This document shows positions 161-61,373 of a stretch of DNA of 64,000 nucleotides, one piece after another. The stretch lies in assembly GCA_965649825.1 (NCBI GenBank), contig OZ287706.1, forward strand, positions 186,001-250,000. The letters are read 5' to 3'. Each line of letters starts with the position of its first letter. The stretch's first letter is position 1. A program made the position numbers and the translations under genes. This DNA is from Penicillus capitatus (lineage: Eukaryota; Plantae; Chlorophyta). The notes beneath the pieces were generated by a model, which was not told the origin of the DNA, did no database searches, and saw nothing but the letters and a program-made list of their open reading frames with translations.

Positions 161-3100
161 ATGTCGCCATGCTCGATCGCAGATGACGCATCCCGTCTTT
201 TCATTGCAAATCGCGCACGTGTGATCGGCGTTTTGCTCATGGACGCCGCACTCCATGCAACGTCTGCAGCGGGAAACGCGCCGTCGGACGTGTGGATCCC
301 GAGTGTGGATCGGTTCAAGAGAGCACTGCAGAAATGCACGACAGTGCGCCATGCCTCACACGACAGGTCCCGTGTCGACATGTGCATCGAATGCAATGCA
401 CGGCAACGGGCAGGACTTTGCACGAGATCGTCCTGGACGCACGAACCTACGACGTTCGCTCGCTTAAGTACGCCAGAGAGCTCGGTCTCTTAAACGCCGC
501 GTCTTCAACGGTGAGCCTGGCTAAGGACGAAAGGAGAGCGGCATTTCGGTGTGTCTGTATGGTGTCAGGTTCGGCAGCGGGGAAAGACATCGACAATATC
601 GGCGTCGGAGAGAGACGAGGAGAGACGAGATCCATTCGAGAGCGTCCAAACGGGCGATAACGTCGTGGAGTTCTACGCTCGTTACGGTCAGGACAGTCCA
701 GTCAAGTTCTTCTACTGCAACCGGTATGCTCGCGCCCTTTACGCCCTGCTCACCCGACAGTACTGAATGGACGAAGGGCCGATACCTCTGTCTCTTATCT
801 GCCGTATGATCTGGTTGTGGTGCCGAAGGAACGGCGTTCGAGATCTGAGTACTTTACTGTATCGGCCACCGGTGTTATGCGCATCCATAAAAGCAAGAAG
901 TGATCGGGTAAAGCTGAGAGAAGCATGTATGGTCTGTAGATGTGCATGCGGAGTTCACTCCTTTGTCCGACTGGGTGCACGAGAAGATTATGTTTCGCCT
1001 GTTGAAGCATCTGAAGTTCTATCGATTTTTCTTCGAAATGGGGAGCTTTGTTCGATGGCGTAAGGTATGGGTTGCAGGACGCGAGTGTTCTGGGTATGGC
1101 GGCGCTGTGGCCAGACCGTCCGGCGCATCAAACTCGGCCGTCTGCGAAGTCTCGTCGAGCGTCAGTTGTTTCTGACGATGAAGACGTTTTCCAAGCCCCT
1201 GATGGAACTGCATGCGATGACGCAGCGAGTCGAGGCCTTAGAGTTCTGTCGTATGACGCCGCATCACACTTACGTCATCGATGAGTTCAAAGAGCTGCAA
1301 CGGACGACACGTGAGGAGAGCACCAAACCAAAAATCGGCGAAATCGCCGATACAGCCCAAGCGGTCAGGCACAAGACAGTTCTGCACGCCATGGCCAACG
1401 ACGCGTTATTAGGCATTGGAAGATCTCTGTGTGGCGGTCGAGACGCAGGCACAACGGCACCGCGATTCGATCCGTGACGAATCGGAGCTGCTCGATCAGA
1501 CAGGTAGGCGATCATGCACGCTGTCCGGTCTCGCGCTAGACGTCGGTACGGTGTTAAGGGGTGGAGCTCGTTCCGGGTCAGAGCGCGTCGAAACGAGAGA
1601 GCATGCGAGCGATTCGATTGAAGAAGCGACAGCGAGGGCGGGACTATCGCAGGGCAATGCGCGAAGAGAAGCTTCTCGGGAGATTCGTTCGTCTCGTCGA
1701 TATCATGCTCACCGAAAGTACGCATCGTCCTTTGAGTGTGTCCTTGCTGGTACTGTCTGCGGGTTCAGAGTTGCTGGAGAAGAGCGAGGCGTCGTTGTCT
1801 TTTCTCCTCGAGCAATTGACACCGTCGTCTGCCGTTTCTCCGACGGGAAAAGTGTCGAGAGGCGTCATACAGACGTCGATTCGTTTTGACCAAGGGAAGA
1901 CGCTGTTCTCTCCAGATCATGCTTCGGTCCAGACGGTCATCAACGAGCAGGTTTTCGAAGGAATGGCATCCGTTCTGCAGCAGGTCAGCACGAGATGTCA
2001 CATCACGTCTTAAGTACACATGACGCAGACGCCGCATCTCATCTTTGCTCGGAGTTTTGCGCGGTTCTTTCCAGAAAAGCCGTCGGCAATGAACGCGTTA
2101 CAGTGCTTCATGGCCTCCGAGTCCGAGTCCTGTCAGTCACTCAAACGTCGTATCCAAACGGTACTCAAAAGCGATTTTGAGGAAGCGGCGCATTACGCTA
2201 AAGTATGAAAAAGTGGAAATGTCACACTTATTTCATTGCGCACAATTTTGATTCGATAGGGATTTGATGATTACCAAAGACTGCATGCATTCGGTATCGA
2301 GTGGGATCCGAATCGATTCAGGGAGAGAGCGTCCTTTGGGCTTCGAGAGATCCGACGAGAATTGCATCGGCAGCGAGAGTGGCGCAATGAGTTAGAGAAG
2401 ATGAAGATGTCACAGGTCAGTCACACTTTTCCTAGCTATAAAGCGAAAAGAGTGATGTGACGTCCAGGTGCTCGGATATTTGTGCGTCGAAACCAAAACG
2501 CTGCGCGCTGCGCTGCTGCCTGTTACGGAGACCATCGTCGAAGATCTCAAACGTCTCTTATTGCAACACGCCAGAAGCGTCTGCGCGACAATACTGCAGA
2601 GTTACCAGGAGAGAATTGCACGGTTGCGGCATCGTCCTCTGCTGCTCGACGAGTTTGCAGACTATCAGGCAGAAACGTCCTATTTCCTAGATCTAATACG
2701 ACAGAGGCGTTTCTAGGCGATGTATGCGAAGGAGCTCGATGCGAAGAACGCACTCGTTAAGCGTGTTGCCGAGCTAGACGACATGTATGATCTGCTTGCC
2801 GTTCATCGTCACGAGGTTGCGCCATCTATTGAACGGCAAACCGAACGAAAGGTGTTATTCTGTGGAGATACCGACCGCAGATCAGGTGAAGTATGATGAT
2901 CTGAAAGAGGCCGTCAATGCGTTCGTCGGGGAACTGAAAAGCGGAAAGGAATTTATCGCCGATCAGAAGGAGACGCAAACGATCCATCTGCAAAGTCGCG
3001 TTCGATCGGCAAACGAGACGTTGATGCACATCTATAGATCCCTTCAGAACGGTAATACCATAAGATCGCCACATCACAGCGTTTTGACGATACTGGTCCA

Positions 3101-3862
3101 GGTGCCGTTGTTCATGCCGACAGTGATCCGGAGGCGATGGTGGCCGATTTGGAAGAAAAGCTACAGAAGGTTTTGGAAATGGGGATGGAGATCGAGAAGT
3201 TGAAGCGCTTTCAGACGGTCCTCGAGTTGCCGCCTGACGATTTTCACGACCTCGAAACGGCCGAAAAAGCGGCGAGAGTAAAACTCCAGATCTGGCATCT
3301 GTTCAGACGATTTACCGACCGCACACGTGTGCCTTGACGCAACGCACGCAATCGAAAGGAGACGTCTCTTGTTGTACATACAGACAGGTGGCAGAATGCA
3401 TCGGTGTTTGATGTGGAGACCGGCAGGGTTCGATTTGTCGTCGAGGAGATGAAGAGTGAGATGACTGAGATGACAACGTTAGCCGCCAAGATCGCACGCG
3501 AAAATAGAGAAGTGAACAATGCGGTGGTGTTGCGAGACCGTTGCCCGAGGCGAATGTGTTAGGAGCGCGTGATCCTGCGCCTCAAAGATCGCATGGAGCA
3601 GTTTATGACCCTGTGGCCACTACTGGAGGCTCTCTGGCATCCAGCCCTCGATCTTTCTCACTGGAAGCAGATCGTGGCGCTGCTGCCGTCGACAGATAAA
3701 GGGATAAGCGCTGTAGAGTTAACCCTCCAACAGCTCTTAAGTCGTTTCCAGAAAGGACCGTTGAGCATGATTGACGTGATGGGTGCAGGTTTGGGTATTC
3801 GAGATCATATCGAGACGGTGAAGGGTATCTGTGAGATGGCATCAGGGGTGAAATCCGCTTAA
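161..3862 (+). CDS. Axonemal (inner-arm, DNAH6-like) dynein heavy chain, N-terminal tail only; multi-exon, 5' end uncertain and possibly outside the window
   Basis: Spliced exons give VEFYARYGQDSPVKFFYCNR/..YLPYDLVVVPK..EYFTVSATGVMRIH/..EFTPLSDWVHEKIMFRLLKHLKFYRFF, later IPTADQVKYDDLKE and PLLEALWHPALDLSHWKQI..GICEMASG. These match dynein tail and start-of-linker motifs as I recall them. Frame closes at TAA 3860-3862 and no AAA/P-loop exons follow. Confidence 0.8.
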
Positions 3863-6800
3863 CGCTACGGCAGATACGGTGCCGAATTTTGGCCTCGGCC
3901 TCTGTAAAGAACCGCGAGATGTCGAAAGCAAAGATCAAATAACTGCCACGTTTTGCCGGAAAAAACTGAAATGCTGGAAATAAGAGGATGACATTGGACA
4001 GCACGATGGGGGAGGGATGCGCTAGCGATTACAGTTGGTCTTGTGAGACCATTCAGTCCGAATCATAGACAAGACACTAACAGTTTCGGTAATTGACATC
4101 AGAGTCACGTTTTGTAGTTACGTTCATACACTTCATTGAGGTGTTTATTTTCGACATCCGAAATATGAGAGCGAAATAAAGCATCATTCGACCGGAATCT
4201 TACAGTACGACCACAGATTCCCCACCGCCACGTGACTGGGCGGGCATTAGATTTTAATGCATATACTTAGCAAACACCCACGACTGGATTTGTCTTACGG
4301 AGATGGTTTTCGTTCGACACGACAGTATGGTGCGTTAAATCAACAGAAGGATAAAGGCGGCCCAGAGCGCGAAAAGCCCACAGACGATTTTGACTCCTGC
4401 GTAGCTTCGTTGTTTTGCAACAGAGGTAGGTTCTTGTGCGCCGCGTTTTCCAGAAAGGACATCGGTCTTCTCCACGTTAGCTGTTGCCATATTGCAGCAC
4501 AAACGACACGGATCAACGAAGGCGCGTGACTGGTTGGTTAAAAGGCGCAGATCGATGATGCGCGCGCGGCTGGTCGGTTAAAAGGCAGTAGTGGACGGAC
4601 AACTTCGAAGCGACCTGCAACTTGGAGGATGCTGTCTGTGCTGTCTGGAATCTGCGAAAAGACTTGCCTCCGAACAAATTCGCCCTGTCCACTCGTTTTA
4701 TCAGAATCCGGGATAACCGCCGTGTCAGGTTTTGCGCAAAAAGTCCACCTGACGTATGTCTGGAGGCTGATGCCGTCCGACTGGATGCCGAGGAAGAGAA
4801 CACGGCCACAGACGCGCTGTTTTGAGCTTTTGGAGGCGAGAAGTCTCGTGCCGTGATTGCCGAAAGAAGCTGCTGTCGTTTCATCTGTTTCTCACATTCG
4901 CCTCTGTGCTGCACGCAACTGCTCAGGCGGCATACGTTACGAGAAACGGGTGTAAACGGCAAAAGCGGCGGGCGTGTTTCGTGGATCGTACGCTTCGGTC
5001 ATCCACTCTAGTTCCTGGCCCGTAAGGTATGGAGACAGCAGACAGACACGTGCCCATTCATTTCCATTGACCGCCACGAGATTGTTTCGTACACGGAGGC
5101 ATTTTGAAGGACATGTTGTCATTACCATTCGACTTGGTTCGCTCTTATGCTTTTGTAGCATATGTACTGTTGTGTCCTATGGCTATCGGATCGTGCTGCC
5201 CTAGATGTCGTACGATCGTTGTACCCGCAGTCGATTCTCAATTGAGCGGCTCCATCAGCAAAACAGGGTATGCCAAGGTCCCGGAGACAGAACATGAAGT
5301 GAATCCATCGTCGATGAAGAGTGTCGAACGACGCGATTCGGTCGAACGAGATGACATCGGATGAAGCAGACCGCGTTGCTGTTCATGTCCATCACAAAAA
5401 CGGCCGTTCCTCTGCCGCGTGTGCTGCACACAATGGCAAAGTCATCCACTACAAGATGACCATCGCGTTGTTTTTTACAGCGAATTCAACCTCGGCTTGT
5501 GAGCAAGTCGTCAGTTTCGGTTTTTACAAAGAATGTAAACAACGGGTCAAAAAAGAGTGTTCCCTTCGAAATGTGTCACATCAGGAAAATGACAAGCTAA
5601 ACTACCGATGAGCATAAAGTGTGTTTTGTTCTTGCTTTACTGCAGCATGATGCTGCAGAGATTGAACAGGGACGGACTACGGAGGCATGTCGCTAACGAG
5701 ATTTCGGTTTTGCGAGATTAGGTCCAGAGGGCTCCACAAGACATCGCCGACGGTCCACGTCGTTCAGAAAATGATAACGATGGCAAGGATCCACGCCACG
5801 CAGAGAAAAGAGATAATGCGGAATTCCATAGCGTCGTCTTTCTGGCCGAAAAGATACTTAGATATGTCGAGGAAGTTTTCACAATGCACTGGACGCGGAT
5901 TCTAAGCAAGAGGATATTTCCCGGAGCGAAGAATGGCTTTTTCAACAAAAATGCACCGCCCGTGGGGTTTTTGTCTCTGTGGGTTTGAATCGACGAGCTG
6001 TTTCAAAAACAGACCACGTTCGGCGAAACTGTAACAAGGTATGTGTGCCAGGTCATGAAACGTCACATCGCTTCATGAACACCACAGAGCCAAACTGCGC
6101 GCTCTGTTGTTGCCTTGAATCTGCGTCAGATTTTCGTCAACACTCTGGCTTATTTGTCGAGTAGAGTTTCTTGAGTCCACGACGGTGACAAGGATTGCAC
6201 CGTTCTTATTTTTAAAGTGGTCTTTTTGCCTTTGCGAACATCGAACGATCTATCTTCGACGCATGCGCTGTTTTTGCTGAACGCGAATCCAACTGGTCGG
6301 CTGCCTTGGGTCATGCGCCAGAACACCTTGGTTGCAGAGGGATGAGATCGAGAACATGAGTATGTCTCGCTTGTCAGGATGGCTACTCAGACGGTGGCTG
6401 TTTTGGAATCCATATACGGATGGGTCCTTCTATATTTGGATAACCAACAGTACCTTCTGCATCACTGCTAAATCTGCCCTGTGTTGCACACCGTGAGACA
6501 TGGATTGCCGATGCTGAACTCATAGACGTAGCCAGATCAATGCCACCATCAGGGAGGCCAAAATCCGTACTCGCTCAAAATGAACGAACGAACGAACTTA
6601 GCTGGACTGGAGAAAATCCCTCTTTTGAGCAGAGGTGGATATACGTGGAAGGGAGAATAACACAAAGCGAGAAAGGAATGCACGCACTTGACATGTGGAT
6701 TGAAGCTATCTCGATAGCTGCGCCACAAATGATTGTCATTCCTGCTCATCACGATGGAATACCTGTCAAGGTGTGATGATCGAGGCAACGCCGAAGCAGA

Positions 6801-7031
6801 TGACGACCAGAGTGATGTGACCGTTCGTCCGATCTCGTTTCACCGATCCAAAGATCTGCCGTCGACGATCGCGATCGTTTTCGAGTATTCAGCAAAAAGA
6901 CTATTGACATGATGCGTGACGTGCACAGCTTAGATGTCTGATATGATCGAGGTGTATCTTCCAGTGAACTCATTCGTCCGTAAGAATCATAAAGATGATG
7001 CGTACTACTTTGTTAATATGAGATCCGAAAC

Positions 7032-10784: not shown

Positions 10785-12283
10785 TTAGTTTGTGCTGGGT
10801 CCTCGGATTTTTTCGACGACGTGATTTGGTGCCTCGTCCAATTCTCCGGGCAACCAGTTGAAGAGCTGAGGTGGTGCATGATCTGCACAAACATACCGAC
10901 GCCTGTTAGCAGGGGATGCGATCGAAGCGCACAGACCTTTGCCGAAACGTGTGTTGGGGTCACGAAGTTCATCAAAGTATGGATGGGCCAGAGCCTCAAA
11001 GGCAGTGATACGTTGCTTTGGATTGTAAGTGAAGAATTTGGAGAGGAGATCGACAGCATTGGACGGAATATGCCTCTCCGTCATGCGAGAAAGCCATCTG
11101 GCCAATGGCTGGGATCGGATGTTCGGAAATTTAAGCTCGGTGTAGTGACGGTTCATGGCCACCATGTCTTCTCTACTCGGTGTGCCTAGCACTCTCACAA
11201 CTTGAACTAACTGATTCATACTGGTTTCGCCTATATGTCACACAAACAGATTTTTCTCACACATTTGTGGGTGGTGGTGGTTTACTAACTGACCTTGAAA
11301 CATTGGTCGTCCCGTCAATAGTTCAGCCATAACGCATCCTGTTGACCACATGTCAATGGCACAGGTGTATTCGGATGCTCCGAAAATGAGTTCTGGAGCC
11401 CGATAGTATCTGCGCATTGAATATGAGATGCGGTCAAAAGTGTGATCGATGATGTGACCTGGAGCAGATGTATGCAATGTTGGGTTCTCCTTTGACCAGT
11501 ACTTTTGCACTTCCAAAGTCACAAAAGAAGAGTTGTTGCCTTTCCAGGTCCAGAAGAAGATTTTGAGGTTTGATATCTCGATGGCAGATGCCCATAGAAT
11601 GCATGTAAGCCAGTCCTCTGCACATCTGATAGACGTACAATTTCACACATAGCAAGGGCACAGCCTGTTGGTTATTGTTGTAGTGACGGATCAAACGATG
11701 GACCGTATCTGGAACATAATCCAGAACCAAGTGTAAGTAAGACTCATTATCTTCAGCGTTAACGGTGAAGCAATGATGCAGCTTGATGATATTGGGATGA
11801 TTCACTAAACGCATGATTTGCAGCTCACGACTCTTGAATCGCTTGTCCAGTAAAACCTTCTTGATACCCACCTACACGCAGATCGTCCATTGTGTTAGGG
11901 GACAGGGTGCAGGAGAGGGCGATGAAGATACGTGTGCACCCGTGTCGACGCGGACGGCCTTGAAGACAGAGCCAAAAGAACCCGTTCCCGCCAGTTTGCA
12001 CGTGGTATAGCGTATCGTTTCATAGTTACCGCTCTCGTTGAGGATAACGACTTCGAACATCCATCGATTCTCGCTGGCATCCGAATGCAGCACGTGGCCC
12101 TCTGGAACCTACAATGACATTATGTACAGGGAGGACCTCGTGGGTGAAAGGGCACTACTGACCGTTTCCGCTTTTTCCGAAAGCGCCTGAAACTCCCTTA
12201 TCTTTTGATCCTTGACTTTCTGAGCGGCACGGCAGTGAGAGATGAGGGTTGGTGTGGTGGATGGTGGTTTGTGTTACTTTCAT
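10785..12283 (-). CDS. GSK3: Shaggy/GSK3-like protein kinase
   Basis: [70 protein letters not shown] across short introns. First exon uncertain. Confidence 0.95.
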
Positions 12284-16692: not shown

Positions 16693-16846
16693 TGTCTATA
16701 CAAACAGAGTTCGGTCGTGGCGGCGTCGAAGTGTCGTCCCGGATGCCATCATCTATCCCGTCGGCCATTGGACGTTACAAAACGAACCCGCGAACGCAGA
16801 GCGTCAGAACATGACGTCACATCACTCTTTGGTTAGGAAAAGCGTC

Positions 16847-26800: not shown

Positions 26801-28204
26801 ACAGCAACGAGCACTGAGCTGCATCCGACGATGCGAGATCCGTGTCGTGTTCCGCGATACGAAGTTCCTGAAGATTGAGTCTCTCATCGAACTCATCAAA
26901 GCCATCTGCTTTGCCTCGCACGCCGACGAAAAGACAGCCCGCATCTGTCTGGATCTCGTTTTCTACATCACACTGCGTAACCGAGATCGCATCCAGCACG
27001 TCTGGCCAGAGATCGAGGCGCATCTGGAGAGGATACTGAACACGGAACCCAAGTTGCCGTCATCGATCATTGAAGCCGCCGTCTTCGGCATTCTCCGCGT
27101 CTGTCAACGATCCCTTGCGAAGAATGGACTGTCCGGTATCATGCTTCGCATTTTGCAGATGGTGCCGAATGTCGGAGAAGAGATCATTGAGAAAATCGCC
27201 GAACGGCTTTCCGAAGAGATTCACATCCTCATCAAACTGGCAGCACCGGTGATCGAGGAAGGCTGGGCGTGGGAAGCGATCTGTCATCTGCTGTACCTCT
27301 CTGCCACTTCCAGAAAGAACATTCTCTCTGGCGTGGACACTCTAGCCATCATCGCCAAGAACGGAGAGCACATCTCTTCTGAGAACTTCTTGACGGTTAT
27401 GGAGACGCTGAGATATTTTCAACAGCAGTCCAGTGCCGACACCGTCTGCATGATCGTGGATCTGATTCACGATATGGTCTCCTGTTTAACGACCTGGCCA
27501 CTGCCACCCACCGGCGGCGATCAACTCGAGAGCGAAGTCCAAACAGCTGCCACACAGCGAGGCATTCTGTGGTACGGTGCCTTTGTCCAACTGAAGAACT
27601 CGGCTACGGAAATGGACGCTCAAGTGTTTTTTACGGACTGTTTTGTAGTTCTGCAGCAGACGGACTGTCTTTAGGTGCGCAACCATGCAGTGCTAACGCT
27701 GCAGAGATGTGTCATGCTTGGCGAAACGTTGAAGTTGCCGATGGAGACGTGGAAGAAGACGTTGAAGAAAGACATGATGGACTTTGTACAGTTCCTCACC
27801 AAGAAACAGAATAGCCGTGACTTCCCCGAATGTGACAAGACACTGCGTCAGGCGCTGAGAATCTTGACGAAGACTTTCCTGCAGTTTCTGGATGCCATTA
27901 AAGGCGACGCAGATTTCCCACAGACATGGGTGAAAATCCTCTACCTTCTTCAGGTGCGTCGCTCACTGAAGCGTCATCGAAATCTGATGTGACGTGTGTT
28001 CAGCAATCGTACTCTGGTCGAGAGGACGAGCTCTCCGATGCGGTGCCTGAGGAGACGAAGAATCTGATACTGGTGATGCACAAAGAAGGCATCTTGATTG
28101 AAGGCTGGGCGGATGAGAACGGCATGTCCATGTGGGACATAACATGGCGCAAAGCACGTGACATTTCGTTTGCGTTGAAGCCAGAGATGTTGTTGAATCT
28201 GTAA
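23898..28204 (+). CDS. GNOM/GBF1-type ARF guanine-nucleotide exchange factor (Sec7 domain)
   Basis: YLNLDCRIERSNLFEDIC; HFNRDFKKG; FKVPGEAQKVDRVL (Glu finger); LAYSIIMLNTDLH; WGPAVAAISV; ends WDITW..LLNL TAA. Confidence 0.95.
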
Positions 28205-40279: not shown

Positions 40280-42448
40280 ATGCCATCGAGTGAGAGCCTC
40301 GAATTAGAAGAGATTATATCTGGTGAGTGAGGACGTTCTCAAGAATACCAGCGCGCCGCATTCTCGTTAGATGAGGACATCGGCCGCAATGGATACCCCT
40401 CAGAGTGTCCGCCTCATTCTGTGGGATCTTCGTCAGATGAGGCGATGTTGGAGGACGATTTTGGATCGCTCTCCCATTCGGAAAGCGATTCGGAGCTCGA
40501 CATCGAAAGAGAAACGCGTCTGCTCGACGCCTTCAAGTCTCGGCAATGTACAGAGAGCATCTTGATGTGACGTATGGATACTTGTGCAGGCAGAGGGAGG
40601 AGGAAGACGCCAAACAGCAGGAGCTCTCTATGGCAACGACACGACTCGAAGTCCCATCATCTACCGACGGATCTCATTTCGCATGCGATGTTCCTGGCAG
40701 GACGATGAGATGTCTTTGGCGTCGGATGACGTGACAGGTGTCTCTTTTGGCAAGATGGATCTGGAACACATCAAGATACGTATCGCTGAGATCTTGCAGT
40801 TTCTGCAGAGATCTCCCAAAACGGACGGCGATTCTCGTCGTCTCTCGCGTCAGCGATATCTGCAGCAACTGAAGGAAGACATCATGACATACTACAGTTA
40901 CAACGAATTCATGACAGAGATGCTGCTGGCCTATTTTTCACCGACAGAGGCGATTGAGTTCATCGAGGCGAGCGAAGTGCCACGCCCAGTAACCATCCGC
41001 GTCAACAGTCTGAAAACGAAAAGAAGAGAGCTGGCGGCGGCGCTTATCAACCAAGGCATCAATCTCGATCCCGTCGGCGATTGGTCGAAAGTCGTGTCAC
41101 GATTAGATCGCGATCAGCGGACGATGCAGTGTGTGATGTGACAGGTGGGATTGGTCATTTACGACGCACCTGTCGCCGTGGGAGCAACACCCGAGTACAT
41201 GGCAGGACATTACATGCTTCAAGGTCACACCATCCCCATCGACGATCACAATATAAAGCGATGGACAGGTGCATCGTCCTTCCTGCCGTGTATGGCCTTG
41301 GCACCTCGACCGGATGAAGTCGTCGTCGACATGGCGGCCGCCCCCGGCGGCAAAACGACATATCTCGCCGCCATGATGCACAACAAAGGCAGGACAGTCC
41401 GATCACACTTTGTTTTATTCAAAAGAGTGAGAGAGGGATGTATCAGGGATGATTGTGGCCAATGACATGAACAAGAAACGCACAAAGGCCCTGTTTGCAA
41501 ACATCCAGAGAATGGGTGTCAAGAATGCCGTCGTCTGTAATCTCGAAGGCAGAGAACTGTTACAGAAACTGGGTCGACAGTATGCCGATCGCGTCCTGCT
41601 GGATGCTCCCTGCAGCGGCACAGGAGTCATCTCCAAGGATCCCTCTGCAAAAGTGTGCTGCTCCCTTAACTCGTTGTCTTTCGCCGATAGACTGCGGAAT
41701 GACAGAGTAGTAAAAACGAAAAGGATCTGCAGAAATTGACACATGTGCAGCGACAGCTGATATTGGCTGCGATTGATATGGTGAATGCAAAGTCCAAGCA
41801 CGGAGGATGTGTTGTCTACTCTACCTGCTCAATTCTTCCGGAAGAGAACGAAGCTGTGGTGCACTATGCTCTGAAGGAGAGGTTTGTGAAAGTGGTGGCG
41901 ACGGGACTGGAGTTCGGTCGAGATGGATTCGTCCGTTGCGGAAAACATCGATTTCATCCCTCAGTCAAGGAAGCGCGACGTTATTACCCGCATGCACATA
42001 ACATCGAAGGTCACATCATCACACTTTGATGACATAGAGTGAGAAATGATATTCAGGTTTCTTCGTCTGTAAACTGCAGAAGTTTCAGAATGGATCGCGG
42101 CGAGATGTGTCGCAGGGGAAAGTGGAAGAGAACGAAGAGGAAGCTGTGGAGAAGGCACGGAAAAACGGCCTAATCGATGAAGGCTTAAAATTCCCGCCGC
42201 CGAACGGAACGGCACATCCCCAGATCAAACGACCGAAGCCCACCGAGGGCGAGGCAAAAGAACGCAGGCCTTCGTGGCTGGTGACAGCGACAGATGCGAC
42301 AACTTCCTCTGGCAAACGAAAGAAGCTCTCGTGGGGGAAGAAACTCGCCGAAGTACAGACCGTCTTTGTGCTCTATCTCTGCTCCCTACACAATTTGTCT
42401 GCCGTAGCAATTGAGGGCCAAGAGATCAAAGTCCTGACGAAGAGATGA
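40280..42448 (+). CDS. NOP2: NOP2/NSUN1 25S rRNA m5C methyltransferase
   Basis: RPVTIRVNSLKTKRRELA; GATPEYMAGHYMLQG; DMAAAPGGKTT; VANDMNKKR; DRVLLDAPCSGTG; VYSTCS; HNIEG/FFVCKL. Confidence 0.95.
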
Positions 42449-42672
42449 GAGATGCAGGAGATGGATGGAATCCGAACGGACACGCTATTTGTGTTAACTG
42501 ACCGACTGACGTTCTGTCGAATCGATCGCGTTTCTCCGGGCCGCCGCCGCAGCAGCTGTCACATCAAGCCGACGAACGAAACGACCCCGACGACGTTGAC
42601 GCTTCATCTCGGTGGTCCTTGTGGACGAAACCCTTAAGCGTCCTTCGGGCGAAACGCCTCCTCGTCTTCTGC

Positions 42673-44974
42673 ATGTCACCCACTGGCCTTCGTCGCGTCA
42701 TGTTCTGCCAAGGCCACCGCGGCGTCGCATCTTTCGCGTTGCGCAAGGCGGTCGTCTCAGCGCGACCTGTTCACCGACCCATCTCATGGGCCCGTCGTCA
42801 TATCAACGATCGTTTCAGGCTCTTGGCTGAAAAAGAGACCGTCACATCATCTTCTTCAGGTTGACCCAATGTCGCAGAGGACTCGTGAGGAGACAGACCG
42901 GTGCGGCATTCAGAGAATGGCCTGGCGATGGGCGTCGCGATAGAAGGGGATCTGTCTGTGATCGATGGCGCCACCGTCGATGAGACGACGTATGTCGAAA
43001 AGTACCGTTGCGATCAGAGGACGGTGTCGATTGTCGTGGTCGGCGCCTCGGGCGATTTGGCGAAGAAAAAGATCTTCCCTGCATTGTTTGCCCTCTACTA
43101 CCAAGGAATGCTTCCAGAAGTCAGGACCAGCAGATATCTCATTACCAAATGTGTGACGTGTGACCCGTCTGACTGTTTCTCCAGAACTTCCAGATCTTCG
43201 GCTTCGCACGGAGTCAGATGTCCGATGCGTCTTTTCGGGATGCCATCGTCGAGACACTGACATGTCGGATCGACGCTGGGTACATCACACTTCTCACTCT
43301 TATGCCATCGTCCATTCGCCTTTCCGTTTCTAGAGAGAACTGCGAAGAAAAGATGGACCATTTCTTGGAAAGGTGCTTCTATAAATCGGTACGGAACGCC
43401 GGAGCCCGAGCAAGAGAAGTGAAGGTGGTGGTGTAGGGGCAATACACAAGTCCAAGCGACTTCAAATCGCTCGATGCGATGATGCATACCATAGAAGGTC
43501 CTTGTCCAGCCGATCGCGTATTCTACCTCTCCATTCCGCCCAGCGTCTTCACCGACGCCGCCGCCAATGCCTCTGATCACTGCTCCAGCTCGTACATCTC
43601 GTTGGGCACAACGAAAGGAGTGATCTGGTCGGTATTGTGTGAGTAGATCAGGCTGGACGAGGTGTGTCGTGGAGAAGCCGTTCGGCAGAGACAGTGGATC
43701 GAGTCGGCAACTGAGCGAGGCACTTTCTCGCCATCTGACGGAAGATCAGATATACCGAATCGATCATTACCTTGGCAAAGAACTCATCGAGAATCTCACG
43801 GTAGTAAACAACACAGAGCGTTCACCGCTCTCTAGCAAACTGCAGAGATGCGTGATGTGACAACCTGTGTGCCAGGTGCTACGGTTTTCGAATCTGATCT
43901 TCGAGCCGCTCTGGTCTCGGCAGTACATCAAGAACGTCCAGATCGTCTTTTCGGAAGACTTTGGCACCGAAGGCCGTGGTGGATACTTCGATCAGTACGG
44001 AATCATCCGAGACGTCATCCAAAATCACCTTCTGCAAATTGTGGCACTCTTTGCGATGGAGCAGCCTGTCTCTTTGGACGCAGAGGATATCCGGAACGAG
44101 AAGGTCAAGGTCCTGCGCAGCATCGAGAAGGTCAATATCGATGACGTCGTCCTGGGACAGTACTCGAAACGCCAGACGAGGGGACACACCTACCCTGGTT
44201 ACATCGATGATCCCACTGTTCCGCAGAACAGGTCAGGCATCCCTGTACACCTCCTGTCACATCATGGATCGTGTGTGCATGCCGACAGCATCACGCCGAC
44301 ATTTGCTGCGCTGGCCCTGTTCATCAACAACTCCCGGTGGGCCGGTGTTCCTTTTCTGTTAAAAGCGGGGAAGGCGCTGAACAGCAAGCGTGCCGAGATT
44401 CGCGTCCAGGTAATGCAATCGTGGCACTGATCGGTGCAGACTCGCAACGACGACGTCTTCTTTGTGTGTCCTGTGCAGTTTCATCAAGTGCCGGGCGGAT
44501 TGTATAAGGGAAAGTTTGGTGTCGATTCTGCCAGTTCTTTTAACGAACTCGTTATCCGTATCCAGCCGAAGGAGGCCATTTACCTCAAGATCAATAGCAA
44601 GGCGCCAGGTCTTGGCATCCGTATTGAAAACACGCGTCTGGATCTGCCATATCACATCCGCTACGACAAAGAACTCCCAGACGCCTACGAACGTCTCATT
44701 CTGGATGTCATCAACGGTTCGTTCTCTCACTCTTTCGCTGACGTGACGGCAAAAGTGTGATGCAGGAGACAAACGCCTGTTCATACGGAATGATGAGTTA
44801 GACGCCGCATGGGAGTTGTTCACGCCTGTTCTCGAAGCGTTGGAAGAAGAACAGACGGCACCTGAACTCTACCCCTATGGTTCCAGAGGCCCAGTCGGGG
44901 CACATTACTTAGGCGCCAAGTATGACGTCCGATGGGGTGATCTCTCTTACTCGCCCAGCACCAGCAACGAATGA
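42673..44974 (+). CDS. G6PD: Glucose-6-phosphate dehydrogenase, plastid (redox-regulated) type
   Basis: [16 protein letters not shown]; LTCRID..ENCEEK (the two regulatory Cys of plastid isoforms); RIDHYLGKE; [18 protein letters not shown]; PDAYERL; YGSRGP; N-terminal transit-like peptide (start approximate). Confidence 0.96.
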
Positions 44975-45051
44975 CGTGACAGCGATGCGACAGGATGACG
45001 CAATGCTTGGACGTATTTTAACAACGGCCAGATCCATTTCAGCGTTTCCCA

Positions 45052-48000
45052 ATGGCCAGTTCCGCATTTTATCGCGAAGCGGTCGCGAATCAACAGAAAC
45101 TCTTCGAAGAGCTTGTTGGAAAGATCCTCGGTCCGGAGGTCGCACCGACCGTCGCGCGATGTGACGTTTGCCATGGGTCCGTTTCTCTAGGCGACCACCG
45201 GAGAGAAGAGACGGGCAGTGGGGCGCTGTCAACATCGCTCGGCGTTTCATGGCTGCCTCGACACGCATTCCACGGCAGTCGAGGCGGAGCTGCGTCGCAT
45301 CGTCGAGTTCATGCGGATCGAATCGCGGGAGCGCGACACAGCAAGACTGCTAAAACTCAAGGAGCGTTTTCTCAGTCTATCCCTTCCGTCTGACGTCACA
45401 GACGTGCACTACGTTATGCTTCGCTTCCTGACCTGCCTCACTGGCAATCTCTCCCGCGCCAGTCAAAGGACAGAAGAGGCAATGGAGATCGAATCATCCG
45501 ACGGGGCAGCGAACAAAGACGACGTCAGTCTTTCTAACTCTCTGAGTGATTCCGCAGAAGCGAGTGCATCGGAGCTGTCGTGCTGGTCTGAAGAGGACGT
45601 CGGCGAGGAGAGCAGCCATACGGCCATGAGCAGCGAGGACATGCCACAGGAAGCAGCTCTGCTGAACTGGGAGGCGTACTTCGTCCCCTTCTGCGATGCC
45701 GAGACGTCTGTCGTCCGAACAGAGCAGCCGTCCGATGGATCGCTGCTGGAATGCTTGACGAAGATTCAGTTGCCAGAGGTGCCATTGAGTGCTTGTCTGT
45801 TGTTTCTGCGTTCGGAGTGGGACCTTGTCCTCAGTTGCCTGAGAGTCCTCCAGGGACGAGACTCTGTGGCCTTTCAGTGGGATCGATGCACTCGTGCCTT
45901 CGCAATCGATGTCCATCTTCAGACGCTACACTTTTCCGCCGCCACGATGCGACATGCGCTAGAATGGTTTGGACGCTATGGATGCGACACTCGGTGTCTC
46001 CTGGAATGGACGGCTTCCATCGTGGACGTGAGCAGTCGACAGGAGCTGAGCGGAAGCTACGGCCGCCGTCCTCTCTCTTCCCAACCCGTCGTCTGTCCAA
46101 CCCTCTCCGCAACGGCACATGCGATTCAGGCCGAGCTCAATCGATTGCTGCGTCCTTTGATTCAGACGGAGCATCTCGTCGAATGCGATCCCAGTCGTCG
46201 CGTAACGCTCGTTCGTTTGAAATGCCTGACATCGGCAACGGCACGACAGATTCGCGTACTGCACAGTGTGGTGCGGGAACTGCAGCGCGTATTAGAGAGT
46301 GATATGTCTTCGAATGCCATGACGTCTGCCGTTTTGGACTGTCTCTATGACATGGCGACGAAGAACGAGGCGAACAGCAGTCCTCTCTTTCAGGCAGGAG
46401 ATGAAATGATCTGGAAGATCTTTACCGAAGCACTGTCGCCTCTTCTCTCGCACTTGACGGCTTGGCTGTACATGGGCGATGTCTCGAGCCTTGCAGACGA
46501 TTTCTTTATTTCGTCGATGCCGGCGCGTCAGACAGAGGAGGCAGATTTCTGGTTGGATGCTTATGTCTTGAAGGACGATGGGTCATGTCCCAAATTCCTT
46601 TCTCCCATTGTCTCTGCCATCCACGACGGTGGCAAGGCGCTGCAATTCATGCGGAATCAAGAGCAGGGTTGTGCATTCGATAAATTCGGAACGCAGGAGG
46701 TCGTTGGGACGGGAAAACTGCAAGCGCTCGTTTCCGATCAGTGGACGAATGATCATCTCTGCCAGCAATTCATGAAGTACCTCGCGTCGAACAGCGAAGA
46801 CGCTGTCAGCGAAGAGACGTCGGAATCGACTAGCCTCGCTCAGAAAATGGCCATTGCTGGAAAACATAGAGGCGAAGACGCTGTGCATATTCTGCAGGGA
46901 GCGGTTCCTTGGGAGTATGTGGCCGACGAAGACGCGACTGCCGAATTCAGGACGCCATCGACGAGTCCGAATGTCTATTCCCAATCTTCCACGAGTAATG
47001 ACGTGGCGACGGCTGCTCCGCACGAGAACGTCATCGTTTCGGCGGCGGATGCATCTGACTGGCCAGACTCGTATGTCGACATCGGCAAAGCGATGGAACG
47101 TGTGCGAATTGAATTCGAGTCTGCGTTGCTCACCCAGCCGTCCCACTGCAAGTAATGATATCGCCCGTCGTCTTTGCATGGTGTGGTGGCACACTGTATT
47201 GCACGTGCAGGAATGCCGCTCTGTGTCAGGTCCTTCCTGGAGGCGCCGATCGTCTGCCCTACGCCGAACTCCGAGAAACCATTTTCAAGAGCAGGGGCAC
47301 AGAGATTCCTGCCTTCCCGAACAAGGACGCCGATCTGTCCACCTCGACACGCAACGGCATCCGTTGTGCCCCGGCCGAGGTCGTACTCAGACAAAGCCTC
47401 ATCACGACCTTGCTCAACAGAGTCCGTCCCATTGCTGCTGCCCTTTGGTTTGAAGCTGCTTTCTAGAGTGTGGAGGTCGTTCGCTCCTTCATCGACTTTC
47501 TGCTGAAGGATCAGGGTTTGATGTCGGAGATCCAGATTCTCAAAAACGTCTTCCTTCTCGGTTCGCCTGCCATGGCAGAATGGGTGCGGCGTTTTACCGA
47601 ACAGCTGATTCAGAGCGACGGTCTCGAAGATCTGATCGAGTTCCACGTCCTCACGGATATGCAGGAGTGCTTTCGCAGCTGTCACATCGGCGAGGAGCTG
47701 CCCATCTGCGGATACAACGAATTCGACGAGCTCTTCTTCGACATGCGTCTCTCGCAGTGGGATAAGCGCTTTTCAGATCAGCAGCATCTGTGGAAGGAGA
47801 GGTCACCTCAGGAGATCCACGAATGTGGCCTGAACTATCCCCTCAAGTGGCCCCTCTGTCTCGTCGTCAATGAGCCTCGCCTGAAGAGATACAACAAGGT
47901 GTTTCTCTTTCTCCTGAAGATGCAGTGGGTCAGTTATGCCGTCAAAAGCAACGGCTGGCGAATGAAGCAGCTCCGAGACCACGTATCCCCTGAGCTGCTT

Positions 48001-48560
48001 GTACCGTATGCCCAGCTGCAGAACTGGCGACAGCTGTACCGACTTTCCCACGAGATGACGCACTTTATGAAGCACCTGCAGCAGCACGTCCTGGAAAACA
48101 TCCACACAACGTTTGATCGATTCTGCCAAGTGCGAGCTGTCTTTGATGTGACGTTTGGTGCATACGGTATGTGCGTGCTCAGGGGATGGCGGATGCGCAG
48201 TCCGTTAGCGAACTGCTCAATCAACACGATGCCGCCTTGGAAGATATCGTGCGTTTCAGTTTTCAGACGAAGAAGAAACAATGGGCGACGGTCCATACCC
48301 GTCTTCTCACTCTCTTCCACGCCATTCTCAATTTCTGCGCTTTATGGAAAGCCATTGCTGTCACAGATCGTAGAGAGACGGGCAAGATCGATGTCCTGTT
48401 GGAAGGCATGAATCGAGTGGTCGGGCAATATAACGACACTCGGGCAAGCGTGATGATGATTTTGCAGATCTACAGTTTCTCCCTGGGCGGCAACCGAGAA
48501 CTCAATCATCTCATCGCGCTGCTCAATTTCAATGACATCTACCAACATTACACGCCTTAA
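45052..48560 (+). CDS. Gamma-tubulin complex component (Spc97/98 family, GCP5-like)
   Basis: LLSHLTAWLYMG..DDFFI; FWLDAY..CPKFL..IHDGGKALQ; LKNVFLLGS; LNYPLKWPLCLVV..RYNKVFLFLLK. Paralogue assignment is less certain than the family. Confidence 0.85.
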
Positions 48561-50276: not shown

Positions 50277-50484
50277 GCCATCCCTGATCGCAATCCGAAT
50301 AGCTCTTCTTCTCCCTTTCATTTTATTGGACTTGGCGTCTTTGCCTCAATGCACGTACGCACAGAGCAACGCGTCTCATGAGCTTCTGTGACGCGATAAT
50401 CGCTCTGTTATGTGTATGTATGTATCGTCTGTCCATCGGAAAGGCAAGCGTGTAACATAGTGTCGCGATACAGGCAATGATGGT

Positions 50485-51277: not shown

Positions 51278-52892
51278 TCAGCGCTGTCCTTTCGGAGAGA
51301 CGTCACATCATGTGAGCTAGATTCCTTTACCTGCTGGTTGGTAGACGTCGAAGCAATCTCCGTTCAGATCACAGACGCGATCTGCATTGTGGATGCGCTG
51401 TACGTTTTCACGCTCGTGTGCTGGAGGCACGATGTCTGAAACAAACGTTCTTGAGTAGTTGGCGGTTATCGAACTATATGAATCTCTCTACCTGAATCAG
51501 CACATGGGCAGACATCGGAACACGCGATACCAGTTCCGGTACACTTGGCCAGGCACTCATTCGCGTATGTCTTCTTATTAACGCCGCACACTGGACTGTA
51601 GATTTTCGGACAATCTGCACAGGTTGTACTCGGCTTGAGCTCCGTAGTAACCGGACTGATGCCTAGACGGGTCGATCTTAGCGACCTGAGAGAAGTATTC
51701 AGCAATACTTCCCGTACCTGGTTTTGAGCATGGACACGTGCCTTCGCACGCAATGGCGATTTCAGCACACTTGGCCTCGCACTCATTCTCGTACGTCTTC
51801 CCATTAACACCGCACACCGGACTGTAGATTTTCGGACAGGGACAGCCTGTACTTGGACTCGGTTCGGGTTCCTTAGTAGGGGGACTGATGCCTAGACGGG
51901 TCGATCTTAGGAGTGTTCGGCAATACTTCCCGTACCTGGTTTTGAGCATGGACACGGGCCTGTGCACGCAATGGCGATTTCAGCGCACTTGGCCTCGCAC
52001 TCATTCTCGTACGTCTTCCCATTAACACCGCACACCGGACTGTAGATTTTCGGACAGGGACAGCCTGCACTTGGACTTGGACTCGGTTCGGGTTCCTTAG
52101 TAGGGGGGCTGATGCCTAGACGGGTGGATCTTAGCAACCAGCGAGGAGTGTTCGGCAACGCTGTCCGCACCTGGTTTGGCGACACATGGGCAGAATCCAG
52201 AGCATGCTACTGTAGTTCCTGCGCACTTGGCCAGACATGGGTTTTCGTAGCTCTCCCCATCTGCCCCACAGACTGGACTCGAGATTTTGGGGCACCCGCA
52301 CGGTATCTGCATTCCACTCTCCACTAACAAGACGCAATGCCGTTTTTTGTCACCTGCCTTGGGAGCCACCGGAGATGGTAGTGGGGATGTTGGTGGCGCC
52401 GATGGAAGAGGTTTGACAGGAGTAGGAGTTACCGGAGATGGTTGTGGGGATGTTGGCGACGCCGATGGAAGAGGTTTAACAGAAGTGGGACAATGACGGC
52501 ACCAGAAGGGATGCCACTTGGTTTTTGGCTCGCCACCTTGATCAAGACAGCGCATTCTATGGCGGCCTGCAAGGCGATCGAGCCTTACATGGGCAAAATC
52601 CACTACAATCGACCTCAACTCCGCGACACGAAGCGGTGCAGACGTTGGCGTAGGTACGACCGTCTTGGCCGCACACGGGCGCATACCACCAGAAGATCGG
52701 GACAGGTTTCGTACAGAGGCACAAGGGAATCGCCTCATCAGATCCTGAACACAGAGAGGTTGCGGCGGTCTATTGAGTAAGAGGCGAAATTGCGCGTGTC
52801 CCGAGGGCGACGCAATGTCACGTACCTTCGTAACCGGCCGTTGTTTGGAAAAACAGCGCAGCGACGGAGACAACCAGCAGAAGTCGCAACAT
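51278..52892 (-). CDS. Secreted five-domain Kazal-type protease inhibitor with a Ser/Pro/Thr-rich linker
   Basis: Signal MLRLLLVVSVAALFFQTTA; Kazal units C.C....PVCG.DG.TY.N.C.A.C....C.G.CPC, five copies; SPTSP linker. The apparent frameshifts in the ORF track are phase-1 GT-AG introns. Confidence 0.88.
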
Positions 52893-58636: not shown

Positions 58637-59439
58637 GATTCTGTGTTTGTGGAGATGGGAATCGTTTTGGAAGTCTACTGAGCCCAGTCAGTCAGACAGA
58701 CAGACAGACAACCAGAGTACAAAACACAATGCAGCGCGGCGGACGAAAGAGGAAGGTATCTTCGAGGAACTGTAACGTTCGCTGAATACTTGTCATTGTT
58801 ATGCAAACGGTGAACATAACGTAAAACATGACATAAGGAAAATAACGTTCATAAGTGTGGTCTGCCACTCAAATACCATACGATTTAGACAAGCAGCCTG
58901 TACTTTCACCTTTATCGTGTTGTACTTCGATAGCGCGTTGTGTCTGTTTGTTGCATTATCTTGTGTCAATGCATATTGATTGCCAACATCCAATCTTGCA
59001 GATCGTCGAGTCACATCAAATATGGCGAGGTGAACGGCCTTTTCAACGACACGATCGATCAAACGTCGCGAATAATCACAGGAAACGGCGAGATCAATGA
59101 TTTTTGAGATTTGTGTTCGTTGTCGCTCTGACGATGAATGCACCGATCGATCCCTTCCTCAAGCCGTCTTACGATCAAGTTCTTTTCTGCCATTTGGACC
59201 AGAGGGTCATTGTCATCTCTCTCGATGAAACAACCAGCTGCGCAGAATCACCAGGTGTCCAATGAACGGCGTAACAGTATAAAAAATGAAAGTGGCACGT
59301 GAGAGACAAATTTAAACTCTCTTACCGAATGCGACCAACAGCGTGCACAGATTGAGACTAGACAATTGGATCACCGTGTTAAATTGTTGAAGTTCTTTTC
59401 AAGTGCATCGAATTCCATGAGGCGACACTCGACGGCAAA

Positions 59440-60835
59440 ATTTGGAGGTACTCATCGCACAGCTCTTCGATGTACATGTCCACACTCATCCTCTCTGTCT
59501 TTTCTTGGCACAAGAAGGATGCGTTTGTACTACAGATGTTCACAGCAATGGCGTCCAGATGATCGATCTGGTTTCGTGTTACCCTCGGGTGCTTCGTACA
59601 GAACTCGGTCGACTGTCCCGCGACCGCGGGCGAGTTGGAGTGTCCCCGCGCGGCATCCGTTCTATGTTCAGAGGAAGAAGCTCTCTTCTTCGAAGCGGAG
59701 GAGACGACGTCGATACCGTTGTCCGTTTCCGCGAGCTTGGGACGTCATCGAGGATCTCCTCATCCGTCCACTTCGGCGACATCAATCCTAGTGTCGTCCT
59801 GCTCGCCGTGTTCGCCGGAGATCATGGTAATCTGCAAACGGTCGAATATCTGCGGTCAACGAGGGCTTCAGTTATGGATATCGAGGCTATCTTCTGGATC
59901 AGCTCTGTCTGCTGTCAGATGGGCCACAATGTCGCCCCGGTAACCACAGAAAACAGACGATCGAAGATTTCATCGCTTTCTCACACACATCGGCTTGCGA
60001 AAGGGTAAAACAGACAAGAGAGACTGGACAATAGACTTGCAGGGATTCCACGTTTCTGGTGCCAGATGGTGTCGAGTGAGGGATTCAGCAGACCACGAGC
60101 TTCTGTCCCTTTCCCGACACATGACGCGTTTCTCGCTACGCCGCTCATAACACCTGGAATGGATGCCCCTGCGAGTGCCTTCTGTACTTTGTTTTCGTCC
60201 GTTCTTCCTTCAATGAGGATTATAGGCACACCTGCATGGCGTGCTCATCTCGGAGGAGACGGTGCTGACGGCGGCGCACTGGGTGAACGGATCCACGGAT
60301 ACTGCGTGCCTGTTCTCGTGATCGATGCTCTGGTTATCTAGAGCAAAGGCAACAACTGCCGAGAACAGCCAGGAGTGCGTGCTCTCTCGCTTTTCCGGAA
60401 ATCTCCACTGACGGCTTCGATTGTTGGCTGGGTTCGGAAAGCGGCGCAGATGATGATCCATCCTTACTGGCTCAGTAGAAACTTCTCGAGATCTGGGAAA
60501 TGGATACGACCTGGTGGAACAAGCCATCGAGCAAAAATTCCATCGCAATTCAGGGACCAGGAGTGGTCAAAACGAGCGATGTTTTGAGATTCTTCTGTCT
60601 TTGAAGGCAATCGAGAAACAGCAGTTTTGCATCGGTCATGCAGATGGGTATCACGAATGTCGAAAGAAGTGCCTGCGAGGCCGAGTACGGAGGAAACTTT
60701 CCGACAAACATCATGTGCACCACGAGAGAAGGAGCTTACTGCGAGGGGGATGAAGGAGACTTGTTTTCAGACAGTGATAGAGAGAGGCTCCTTGGAGTCA
60801 GTGCTTTATGCCCGGTGGCGAATTCATCTAGATAA
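59440..60835 (+). pseudogene. Degenerate tandem copy of the ankyrin + trypsin-homologue gene
   Basis: VRFRELG.. ankyrin-like segment; YRHTC then a frameshift at 60236-60237, then GVLISEETVLTAAHW (cac tgg 60277-60282); later CEGDEGD; several stops. Confidence 0.75.
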
Positions 60836-61373
60836 AGGACTCTCGTTGTCACATGTGACCTGTTGTGCACAAGTCGTTGCTGGTAATGTTCGCCGACAAT
60901 TTTAACTGCGTCATTCATGTTGCTTCAAAAGGTGTGTAATACAGTGAAAAAGTCAACGTGTGGATGGACTTCATCGTCGCTATTAGATTGTACGACAAAC
61001 AGGTTGTCGTCGAAGAGTGGTCAGTCCGCGCTTTTGCTGAGACCAGCGGACATTGTCATCTCCGCACGACTGTTTGAAGAGACCGCAAACTGTCCATCAA
61101 AAACAAACCATCCATGCAAGAGACTGCATCCACACTAGCCAACGACGTCTTCGTGGACATTTATATCTATCATGAGCCACTACGGCAAAGCTTCTTTCAC
61201 TGTTGATGTGACGTTGTGACGTTGAACTTCGCAATGATGTCGCCGACATCCAGTTTAACGTATCGGGTCCGACTGTTCTCAGTGCATTTTTGAACACACA
61301 ACAACCAATCAGAGCTGCAGTGTCGAGAACACGTTTCTTTTCCACGTGCACGTTCGATAGACATTGTTTTGCG

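Follow-up and report, generated by a model that had tools for sequence, protein, structure and literature searches.

A sharp 9-bp word in the tiny introns and spacers of Penicillus capitatus as a possible lineage-specific DNA-binding site

A single 9-bp word, TGATGTGAC (reverse complement GTCACATCA; all counts merge both strands), occurs 21 times in a stretch of 64,000 nt from the siphonous green alga Penicillus capitatus (contig OZ287706.1 of assembly GCA_965649825.1, positions 186,001 to 250,000), which was analysed at its full length and is called the window here. We read this word, with the consensus YGAYGTGAC, as a lineage-specific site that a DNA-binding protein would recognize on double-stranded DNA, and give this reading a probability of roughly 0.4. 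It is favored because the word has a sharp 9-bp specificity and no strand preference, lies in spacers as well as in introns, recurs in three species with turnover of its sites and one reversal of orientation, and appears to be under weak purifying selection. An earlier note, made from the letters of the window, had drawn attention to the word and had offered a genome-wide DNA-binding site as one of several explanations, beside the terminal repeat of an intron-seeding transposon and a self-pairing splicing element.

The word ranks first by count among the strand-merged 9-mers of the window and also has the highest z-score of all of them, with 21 copies against 0.84 expected under a third-order Markov model. 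Shuffles preserving dinucleotides gave a mean of 1.0 copies and a maximum of 5. The 20 copies of the earlier note were all recovered, and one more was added on the minus strand (25624-25632). The excess reported there was likewise found again, at a lower magnitude over the whole window, about 21-fold instead of about 40-fold; in non-coding DNA it amounts to about 20- to 80-fold over chance, in the window species and in its closest relatives. By strand, 10 copies lie on the plus and 11 on the minus strand. The word is also sharply delimited. Copies with one mismatch number 32, against about 23 by chance, beside the 21 exact ones, and the 7-mers within the word owe most of their counts to the full 9-mer. 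A scan of YGAYNYGAY together with all single substitutions left three variants above background in the window, TGACGTGAC (n = 5), CGATGTGAC (n = 3) and TGATGGGAC (n = 6), and CGATGTGAC occurs six times in L003, the syntenic locus of a close relative. The spacing of the two halves is equally strict, as TGAT and TGAC separated by one nucleotide occur 23 times in the window and the other spacings 0 to 5 times, and there is a mild preference for G directly 3' of TGATGTGAC. The unit is defined by these counts as YGAYGTGAC, 9 bp long. The transversion variant TGATGGGAC deserves a separate mention: it lies at 21558, 31730, 40086, 40651, 54840 and 56071, with 0.6 copies expected, and was not found in L003. 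A search of the window against Rfam matched no family, which places the word outside known RNA genes, and a literature search for the 9-mer itself returned primers and unrelated sequences only.

Twelve of the copies lie in tiny introns of 42 to 72 nt, two are coding, and seven fall in spacers, untranslated regions (UTRs) or other non-coding DNA. The figure of twelve had been given before and was reproduced, with the introns at 40563, 51302 and 21280 called from reading frames only. The single coding copy of the earlier note became two, at 25624 (antisense in the GNOM gene) and at 37815 (sense, within a match to the Ion_trans family). Gene strands were assigned from Pfam hits, from homologues and from the alignment to L003, which comes from another ENA assembly, carries the same gene order (NOP2-G6PD-GCP-NAD_binding-Kazal) and is 84% identical to the window over 9.85 kb. 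We also tried an ad hoc dynamic-programming gene finder based on codon log-odds and splice matrices, which was dropped when genes became chained together after matrix training. Coding potential is weak in this genome (the gene finder recovered 15 of 19 known frames) and open frames of at least 40 codons are too common, yielding 7,049 candidate introns. Homology, the L003 alignment and frames checked by eye were therefore used instead.

An unbiased estimate was obtained from the block at 41.4-51.1 kb (9.75 kb), where introns were called by conservation and indels relative to L003, blind to the word; compartment sizes outside this block are rough. The 14 introns of the block (797 nt) hold four copies, against 0.05 expected by dinucleotide shuffling and 0.07 when the two intron halves were shuffled separately. 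Its four spacers (1,973 nt) hold two copies against 0.046, and four further spacer copies were found in L003. Thus, the excess survives in both compartments against a dinucleotide-matched non-coding background, a comparison that the earlier note had named as capable of refuting it. Across the block in both species combined, 8 of 10 sites lie at most 1 kb upstream of the start of the next gene, in zones that make up about half of the non-coding bases; this placement near gene starts favors the DNA-site reading but is suggestive only.

Eight of the intronic copies read TGATGTGAC in the sense of the gene (2453, 21280, 27985, 40563, 41134, 43853, 48144 and 51302) and four read it in antisense (1997, 11450, 42010 and 44256); the seven other non-coding copies are at 5575, 6813, 16816, 42558, 42841, 59010 and 61204. 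The sense copies end 2, 6, 10, 14, 16 or 30 nt before the acceptor. A position of TGATGTGAC close to the acceptor had been claimed in general, and this was borne out by the distances at 41134 (2 nt) and 2453 (6 nt) and failed for 1997 and 44256, which are antisense and mid-intron at offsets of 13 and 24 nt. The claim that GTCACATCA itself forms the donor at 11458 (GSK3) and at 42010 (NOP2) was correct. In all, the GTCACATCA reading is confined to first halves of introns (offsets 0, 0, 13 and 24), and the TGATGTGAC reading lies mostly in second halves (offsets 26-49, one at 14).

This arrangement follows a general property of the introns. The genome, whose GNOM protein is closest to those of Bryopsidales green algae (64% to a EukProt protein, 53% to Bryopsis, 48% to Ostreobium), is compact, with 52% G+C, introns of 41-72 nt and a gene about every 3.5 kb. 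The splice-site consensus is very weak (donor GT[AC][AC], acceptor CAG), and instead of a pyrimidine tract the introns show a polarity, being C-rich in the first half and rich in G and T in the second. Across 17 introns free of recurrent words the GC skew changes from -0.18 to +0.26, and the switch is seen in 16 of them. Short words are distributed likewise between first and second halves: TCAC 17 vs 1, GTGA 3 vs 19, TGTG 4 vs 28, GTCA 11 vs 0 and TGAC 7 vs 16. The intron set used for polarity was partly picked by eye, and its word-free subset gives the same result. The same polarity is present in L003 and in L006, from a third species, and is weak in distant relatives. The mirror pattern of orientations that the earlier note had described is due to this C-rich-then-G-rich polarity, and the two donor coincidences among four antisense copies are unsurprising, since GTCACATCA begins with GT and two of its nine bases come free by simple arithmetic. 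Word-bearing introns are no longer than others (about 53 vs about 55 nt). As an observation in its own right, this mirror-symmetric composition was noted over a set of 30 tiny introns across the window, for example 26595-26658, 21264-21314 and 27954-28003.

The word is shared by close relatives. It is the top 9-mer of L003, with 12 copies in 20 kb against 0.34 expected, and the third species, at 72% nucleotide identity (L006 and L007), has one copy in 0.8 kb. Among the distant relatives (L001 and L004, with 43% G+C, and L005, with 69% nucleotide identity), the word was not found in L004 or L005, and L001 holds one copy only, which is coding; the top k-mers of L001 are simple GATC-type repeats in spacers, and no analogous intron word was found there. 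As negative controls served 80 G6PD loci of metagenome algae (L009-L088, at most 78% identity to the G6PD exon), none of which carries the word. The aligned block contains ten distinct non-coding sites at which the window, L003 or both have the perfect word. Three of them are perfect in both (42558, 44256 and 48144), five are one transition apart (42010, 42841, 44739, 44972 and 45157), and two, 43853 and L003 17087, have no counterpart in the other species or only a strongly diverged one. Of control 9-mers drawn from this non-coding DNA, 21% are perfectly conserved and 47% agree within one mismatch, so that 8 of 10 sites within one mismatch compare with 47% of controls (P about 0.04). These comparisons point to weak constraint with real turnover of sites. 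One orthologous site has changed its orientation: in the G6PD intron 44232-44288, the window and L003 carry the word mid-intron in antisense, and L006 carries it in sense, 11 nt from the 5' end. What is kept across the clade is the identity of the word, and not its places or its orientation.

Two side observations were made in the same comparisons. The window dynein intron at 2450-2467 and the G6PD intron of L006 at about 675-692 share an 18-nt identity, GAGTGATGTGACGTCCAG, which is longer than the 9-mer alone would give and may reflect flank preferences or the copying of a longer unit. Furthermore, synteny between the window and L003 extends over only about 12 kb (window 41399-53330, L003 7568-19198). 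It is lost outright on one side, and on the other side L003 20080-20417 is an inverted match to window 28444-28101, the 3' end of the GNOM region, which indicates a rearrangement between these close species.

Strand-blindness, the spacer copies and the sharpness of the motif favor the genome-wide DNA-binding site among the explanations of the earlier note. The binding of a protein, its being of the TALE homeodomain type and an effect on transcription are what we infer from these features. A direct repeat of two TGAY-type half-sites, set 5 bp apart inside a 9-bp unit, would match the anatomy of the pair sites of TALE homeodomain (KNOX/BELL-type) proteins. In a compact genome the free DNA would consist of the interiors of introns of about 50 nt and of short spacers, which would explain why about 60% of the copies are intronic. 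Inside an intron such a site could work either way round, and the transcript would constrain which orientation fits where: the C-rich reading GTCACATCA would be accommodated in the first half, where it twice supplies the donor GT, and the G-rich reading TGATGTGAC mostly in the second.

The closest known analogue of TGATGTGAC, by similarity of form, appears to be the zygotic response element (ZYRE) of Chlamydomonas reinhardtii, a 9-mer of the form YGACAYGAC without strand bias (PMC4889651). ZYRE is enriched in promoters, 5' UTRs and introns, one of its intronic copies is functional, and it depends on the TALE homeodomain protein GSP1 (PMC4889651). Caulerpa, also a siphonous alga, has an expanded set of TALE homeobox genes (PMC6476727). 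Both elements are 9 bp long and belong to green algae, and both could be read as YGA(C/Y) half-sites in direct repeat 5 bp apart. TGATGTGAC fits ZYRE at 7 of 9 positions and the minor variant TGACGTGAC at 8 of 9; the second half-site of TGAT-G-TGAC agrees, whereas the first is TGAT and becomes TGAC in the minor variant only. Neither shows strand bias (the present word has 10 copies on the plus and 11 on the minus strand, its intronic copies divide into 8 in sense and 4 in antisense, and one orthologous intron has it flipped). The present word is enriched in introns and spacers. In contrast, ZYRE marks zygote-induced genes and peaks 50-100 bp upstream of the transcription start, whereas the present word accompanies housekeeping genes at about one copy per 3 kb and is densest in introns.

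Several points weigh against a protein-binding site on DNA. The case for recognition at the DNA level is made from symmetry arguments. The host genes are housekeeping genes (dynein, GSK3, GNOM, NOP2, G6PD and GCP) with no obvious regulon. TGATGTGAC departs from ZYRE at two of nine positions, with T instead of C at position 4 and G instead of A at position 5, and the ZYRE form TGACATGAC is not clearly enriched in the window (2 vs 0.65 expected). With both species pooled, introns are about three times denser in copies than spacers (7 in 1.6 kb vs 6 in 3.9 kb; P about 0.06), and over the whole window the ratio, from rough compartment sizes, is perhaps 7-fold; such an excess in introns is not expected of a pure DNA site. 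The density of the word is uneven too: one copy lies in 8.9 kb of sequence that adjoins the window on its right, and two lie in the last 12 kb of the window. Exact-protein look-ups of two reading frames of the window found no entry, and the sequence analysed beyond the window is that of its right flank. Lastly, perfect conservation (3 of 6 sites vs the 21% of controls, P about 0.1) leaves site-level conservation only modestly above neutral.

The intron bias could be explained if the word acted in RNA, as an intronic splicing element of which UGAUGUGAC, with its UGAY branch-like cores and UG-rich run, would serve the 3' half and GUCACAUCA/UCACA the 5' half, each read by a spliceosome-associated factor. 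With donor and acceptor consensus as weak as described above, internal signals may be needed; density peaks in introns (the four copies in 797 nt of the unbiased block), the polarity of TCAC, GTGA and TGTG is strong, the orientation of the word follows this polarity, and six introns have a related word, UCACACUU, at 5-19 nt from their 5' splice site. Nevertheless, we consider a splicing element fairly unlikely. Each of the two supposed elements is the exact reverse complement of the other over 9 nt, a relation that independent RNA-binding factors would not yield, and the spacers are also enriched about 40-fold. Only 4 of the 14 introns in the unbiased block carry the word, which is therefore not required for splicing, and the places of sense copies range from offset 14 to as little as 2 nt from the acceptor, with the copy of L006 at 11 nt from the 5' end. 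A branch-point sequence of this lineage would be a more restricted form of RNA signal. UGAU and GUGAC are contained in sense copies, TGAC is commoner in second intron halves, and the median distance between word and acceptor is about 14 nt. Against this reading, the motif is far sharper than usual branch sites and would pair poorly with the conserved GUAGUA box of U2. Compared with the textbook U1, U2 and U6 sequences the complementarity of the recurrent words is partial; ATCACACTT would pair around the branch-recognition box of U2, yet it adjoins the 5' splice site. The four antisense copies among twelve, the two sense copies ending 2 and 6 nt from the acceptor and the presence of the word in just 4 of 14 introns exclude a branch point as a general explanation, as the earlier note had argued from the reverse copies and the short acceptor distances, and we regard it as very improbable. 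The proposal of a self-pairing splicing element did not hold, as both the folding and the end-pairing tests remained at background. Folding was not unusual over 28 introns (mean z -0.3, three below -1.5), the most structured being 2416-2467 (-4.1), 43804-43875 (-2.6) and 44232-44288 (-1.7), and the first 24 nt of introns paired with their own last 28 nt at -10.1 kcal/mol vs -10.9 with those of other introns (permutation P = 0.88).

The recurrence of one sequence, in both orientations, in many introns of unrelated genes of an aquatic alga also recalls the Introners of Micromonas and Aureococcus (PMC9860276), and the introns could have been created by a miniature transposon whose terminal inverted repeat survives as the word. 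Two introns (11458, 42010) do start with GTCACATCA, and a few come near to imperfect palindromes of the form GTCACATCA-TCACACTTT ... AAAGWGTGA-TGATGTGAC, the best being 2416-2467 (z = -4.1). However, Introners have whole-length similarity, terminal repeats, target-site duplications and lineage-specific positions (PMC9860276), whereas here the sequence common to the copies is the word itself, 9-11 nt at most, and the flanks of the 21 copies are unrelated. Both arms are present in no intron in 84 kb of two species, the nearest inverted pairs being 403 and 456 nt apart with none closer in L003. Word-bearing introns are not longer than others, and coincidence with the donor is expected in a fair share of antisense copies, which get their GT free. 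In GNOM, the last intron (27954-28003), which lies in phase 0 between LLQ and QS, occupies the same position in L001, whose 43-nt intron lacks the word, and the G6PD introns 43804-43875 and 44232-44288 occupy the same positions in L003, L006, L005 and L004, the last of these, a distant relative, without the word. All three testable word-bearing introns thus share position and phase with distant relatives that lack the word and are not specific to this lineage as the transposon proposal of the earlier note would have them. A four-species alignment shows ordinary divergent introns. Since these intron positions are old, the word was acquired later, inside pre-existing introns, and an origin as a transposon end has very little chance of being right. 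A functionless by-product of some other generative process on DNA, such as short insertions, slippage of GTGAC units or biased repair followed by neutral decay, is a further candidate. The copy at 43853 lies within a stretch of about 16 nt that is missing from three other species, GTGTGAC GTGTGAC in the intron 43120-43184 is a 7-nt duplication relative to L003, a GTGACGTT GTGACGTT repeat adjoins 61204, close species show site turnover, and one-mismatch copies are in modest excess, about 9 above chance in the window. Such a process would have to place an exact 9-mer at unlinked sites without a known writing mechanism, and the flanks of the copies share nothing. Differences between species are mostly single transitions and not indels, orthologous sites are somewhat more conserved than control 9-mers, and the same word persists in three species at 72-84% nucleotide identity. 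We therefore hold a by-product to be distinctly unlikely.

Words of comparable behavior are known from other compact genomes, such as the DNA replication-related element (DRE), TATCGATA, of Drosophila and the telo-box and site II motifs of plants. In each of these, as here, an exact 8- or 9-mer tops the non-coding k-mers, acts in either orientation, accompanies many unrelated genes and shows site turnover. DRE, telo-box and site II concentrate near transcription starts, whereas most copies of the present word lie in introns along the whole gene body.

The individual copies are distributed along the window as follows. At its left end, a plus-strand dynein-heavy-chain-like gene, with its strand taken from the DHC_N2 match at 3563-3859 (+), contains 1997..2005 (-), antisense and 13 nt inside the intron 1984-2028, and 2453..2461 (+), in sense and ending 6 nt before the acceptor of the intron 2416-2467, the sole word-bearing intron that clearly forms a hairpin (folding z -4.1). 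This dynein gene, at about 500-5000 on the plus strand, shows N-terminal heavy chain regions only and is followed by a convergent gene at 7 kb. A full dynein heavy chain would need more than 10 kb further, and the gene is a truncated gene, a fragment or a domain-only gene. The copy 5575..5583 (-) lies in non-coding DNA amid two convergent genes, flanked by an open frame at 5318-5608 (+) that was negative in Pfam. About 210 nt past the stop of a minus-strand DOMON gene lies 6813..6821 (+), where GTCACATCA would be the donor of a candidate intron, 6763-6821. The DOMON-domain gene itself contains, at about 8300-9100 on the minus strand, an acidic tandem repeat of EGEGDEKEDSKA-like units, with 12-mers repeated eight times. 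The copy 11450..11458 (+) is antisense and supplies GTCACATCA as the donor of the intron 11410-11458 in a minus-strand GSK3-like kinase gene. The copy 16816..16824 (-) precedes a minus-strand kinase-like gene, about 125 nt before its ATG (16692), lies in the spacer that this gene shares with a divergent NUDIX gene, and is part of the composite AAAGAGTGATGTGACGT. In a minus-strand gene, 21280..21288 (-) is in sense within the probable intron 21264-21314, called by reading-frame logic; Pfam was negative for this gene, and the GT31 label of the earlier note was not confirmed. GNOM, on the plus strand, holds the antisense coding copy 25624..25632 (-), in the codons GGT CAC ATC ATG, and the sense copy 27985..27993 (+), which ends 10 nt before the acceptor of its last intron, 27954-28003. 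The second coding copy, 37815..37823 (-), is in sense and probably encodes Asp-Val-Thr in a minus-strand gene for a four-domain cation (calcium) channel, where the open frame 37466-37933 matches Ion_trans across the site.

In NOP2, 40563..40571 (+) is in sense within a probable intron ending at 40589, called by reading-frame logic as both flanking open frames are closed by the two TGA of the word, and 41134..41142 (+) is in sense and ends 2 nt before the acceptor of the intron 41091-41144 (54 nt). The length of this intron is divisible by three, and its sole in-frame stop is a TGA of the 9-mer. The antisense copy 42010..42018 (-) makes GTCACATCA the donor of the NOP2 intron 42010-42056, and the site in L003 is GTCACATCG. 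The copy 42558..42566 (-) lies in the NOP2-G6PD spacer and is identical in L003. The copy 42841..42849 (-), whose L003 site is GTCGCATCA, precedes the first ATG of G6PD by about 20 nt and may lie in a 5'-UTR intron at 42812-42859. Within G6PD, 43853..43861 (+) is in sense and ends 14 nt before the acceptor of the intron 43804-43875, inside the 16 or so nt missing from the other three species, and 44256..44264 (-) is antisense in the middle of the 57-nt intron 44232-44288 and conserved in L003. The length of the latter intron is divisible by three, and it reads through in frame without a stop. Three one-transition variants follow, each of which is perfect in L003: TGACGTGAC at 44739..44747 (+) in the G6PD intron 44717-44765 (L003 10864), TGACGTGAC at 44972..44980 (+), whose first triplet, TGA, is the apparent stop codon of G6PD (L003 11096-11104), and CGATGTGAC at 45157..45165 (+) in the G6PD-GCP spacer (L003 11282). 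The copy 48144..48152 (+) is in sense in the GCP intron 48130-48182, 30 nt before the acceptor, and is conserved in L003. In a minus-strand Kazal-domain gene, 51302..51310 (-) is in sense within a probable intron (donor at 51330) called by reading-frame logic. The last two copies are 59010..59018 (-), in non-coding DNA, and 61204..61212 (+), which precedes the ATG (61434) of a plus-strand gene by about 230 nt and is followed by the GTGACGTT repeat mentioned above.

Two further words recur in the same DNA. The second, AAAGTGTGAT/ATCACACTTT, is present 11 times in the window against 0.5 expected, at sites that include 2222, 2421, 11438, 41403, 42019, 43285 and 44753, and is enriched in L003 too. 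It is this word that reads UCACACUU after the 5' splice site in the six introns mentioned above, with the opposite orientation found once, so that, unlike TGATGTGAC, it looks strand-specific in introns. The third, AAAGAGTGAGA/TCTCACTCTTT, occurs nine times against 0.8 expected and seven times in L003; its sites are at 2446-2463, 16814-16830, 41424, 42036, 43293 and 44726. The composite AAAGAGTGATGTGACGT (n = 2) is the third word fused with TGATGTGAC, and the 49-nt G6PD intron 44717-44765 consists almost wholly of the three recurrent words.

The resemblance to Introners, suggested by a word that recurs in either orientation across many introns of an alga, was overturned by the comparative data, in which the introns are the older feature and the word the later one. 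The polarity of the introns, from C-rich to G-rich, combined with splice sites of low information, is of interest for splicing in itself. A bolder proposal, which we regard as unlikely, is that a single 9-bp word spread through the tiny introns of housekeeping genes in one clade of siphonous algae as a genome-wide response element, for example of a KNOX/BELL diploid-phase switch, with mirror-symmetric introns tolerating both orientations and serving as the main regulatory DNA, or else that word and polarity together form a new code for intron definition. If the reading as a DNA site is true, a nuclear protein would bind TGATGTGAC but not TGATCTGAC, introns of about 50 nt would double as regulatory DNA, and the expanded TALE homeobox families of the Bryopsidales would have in this word a direct candidate target. 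A protein-binding site that three species or more share, at about one copy per gene, and that their nearest sequenced relatives lack, would then provide an accessible handle on gene regulation in a siphonous alga.

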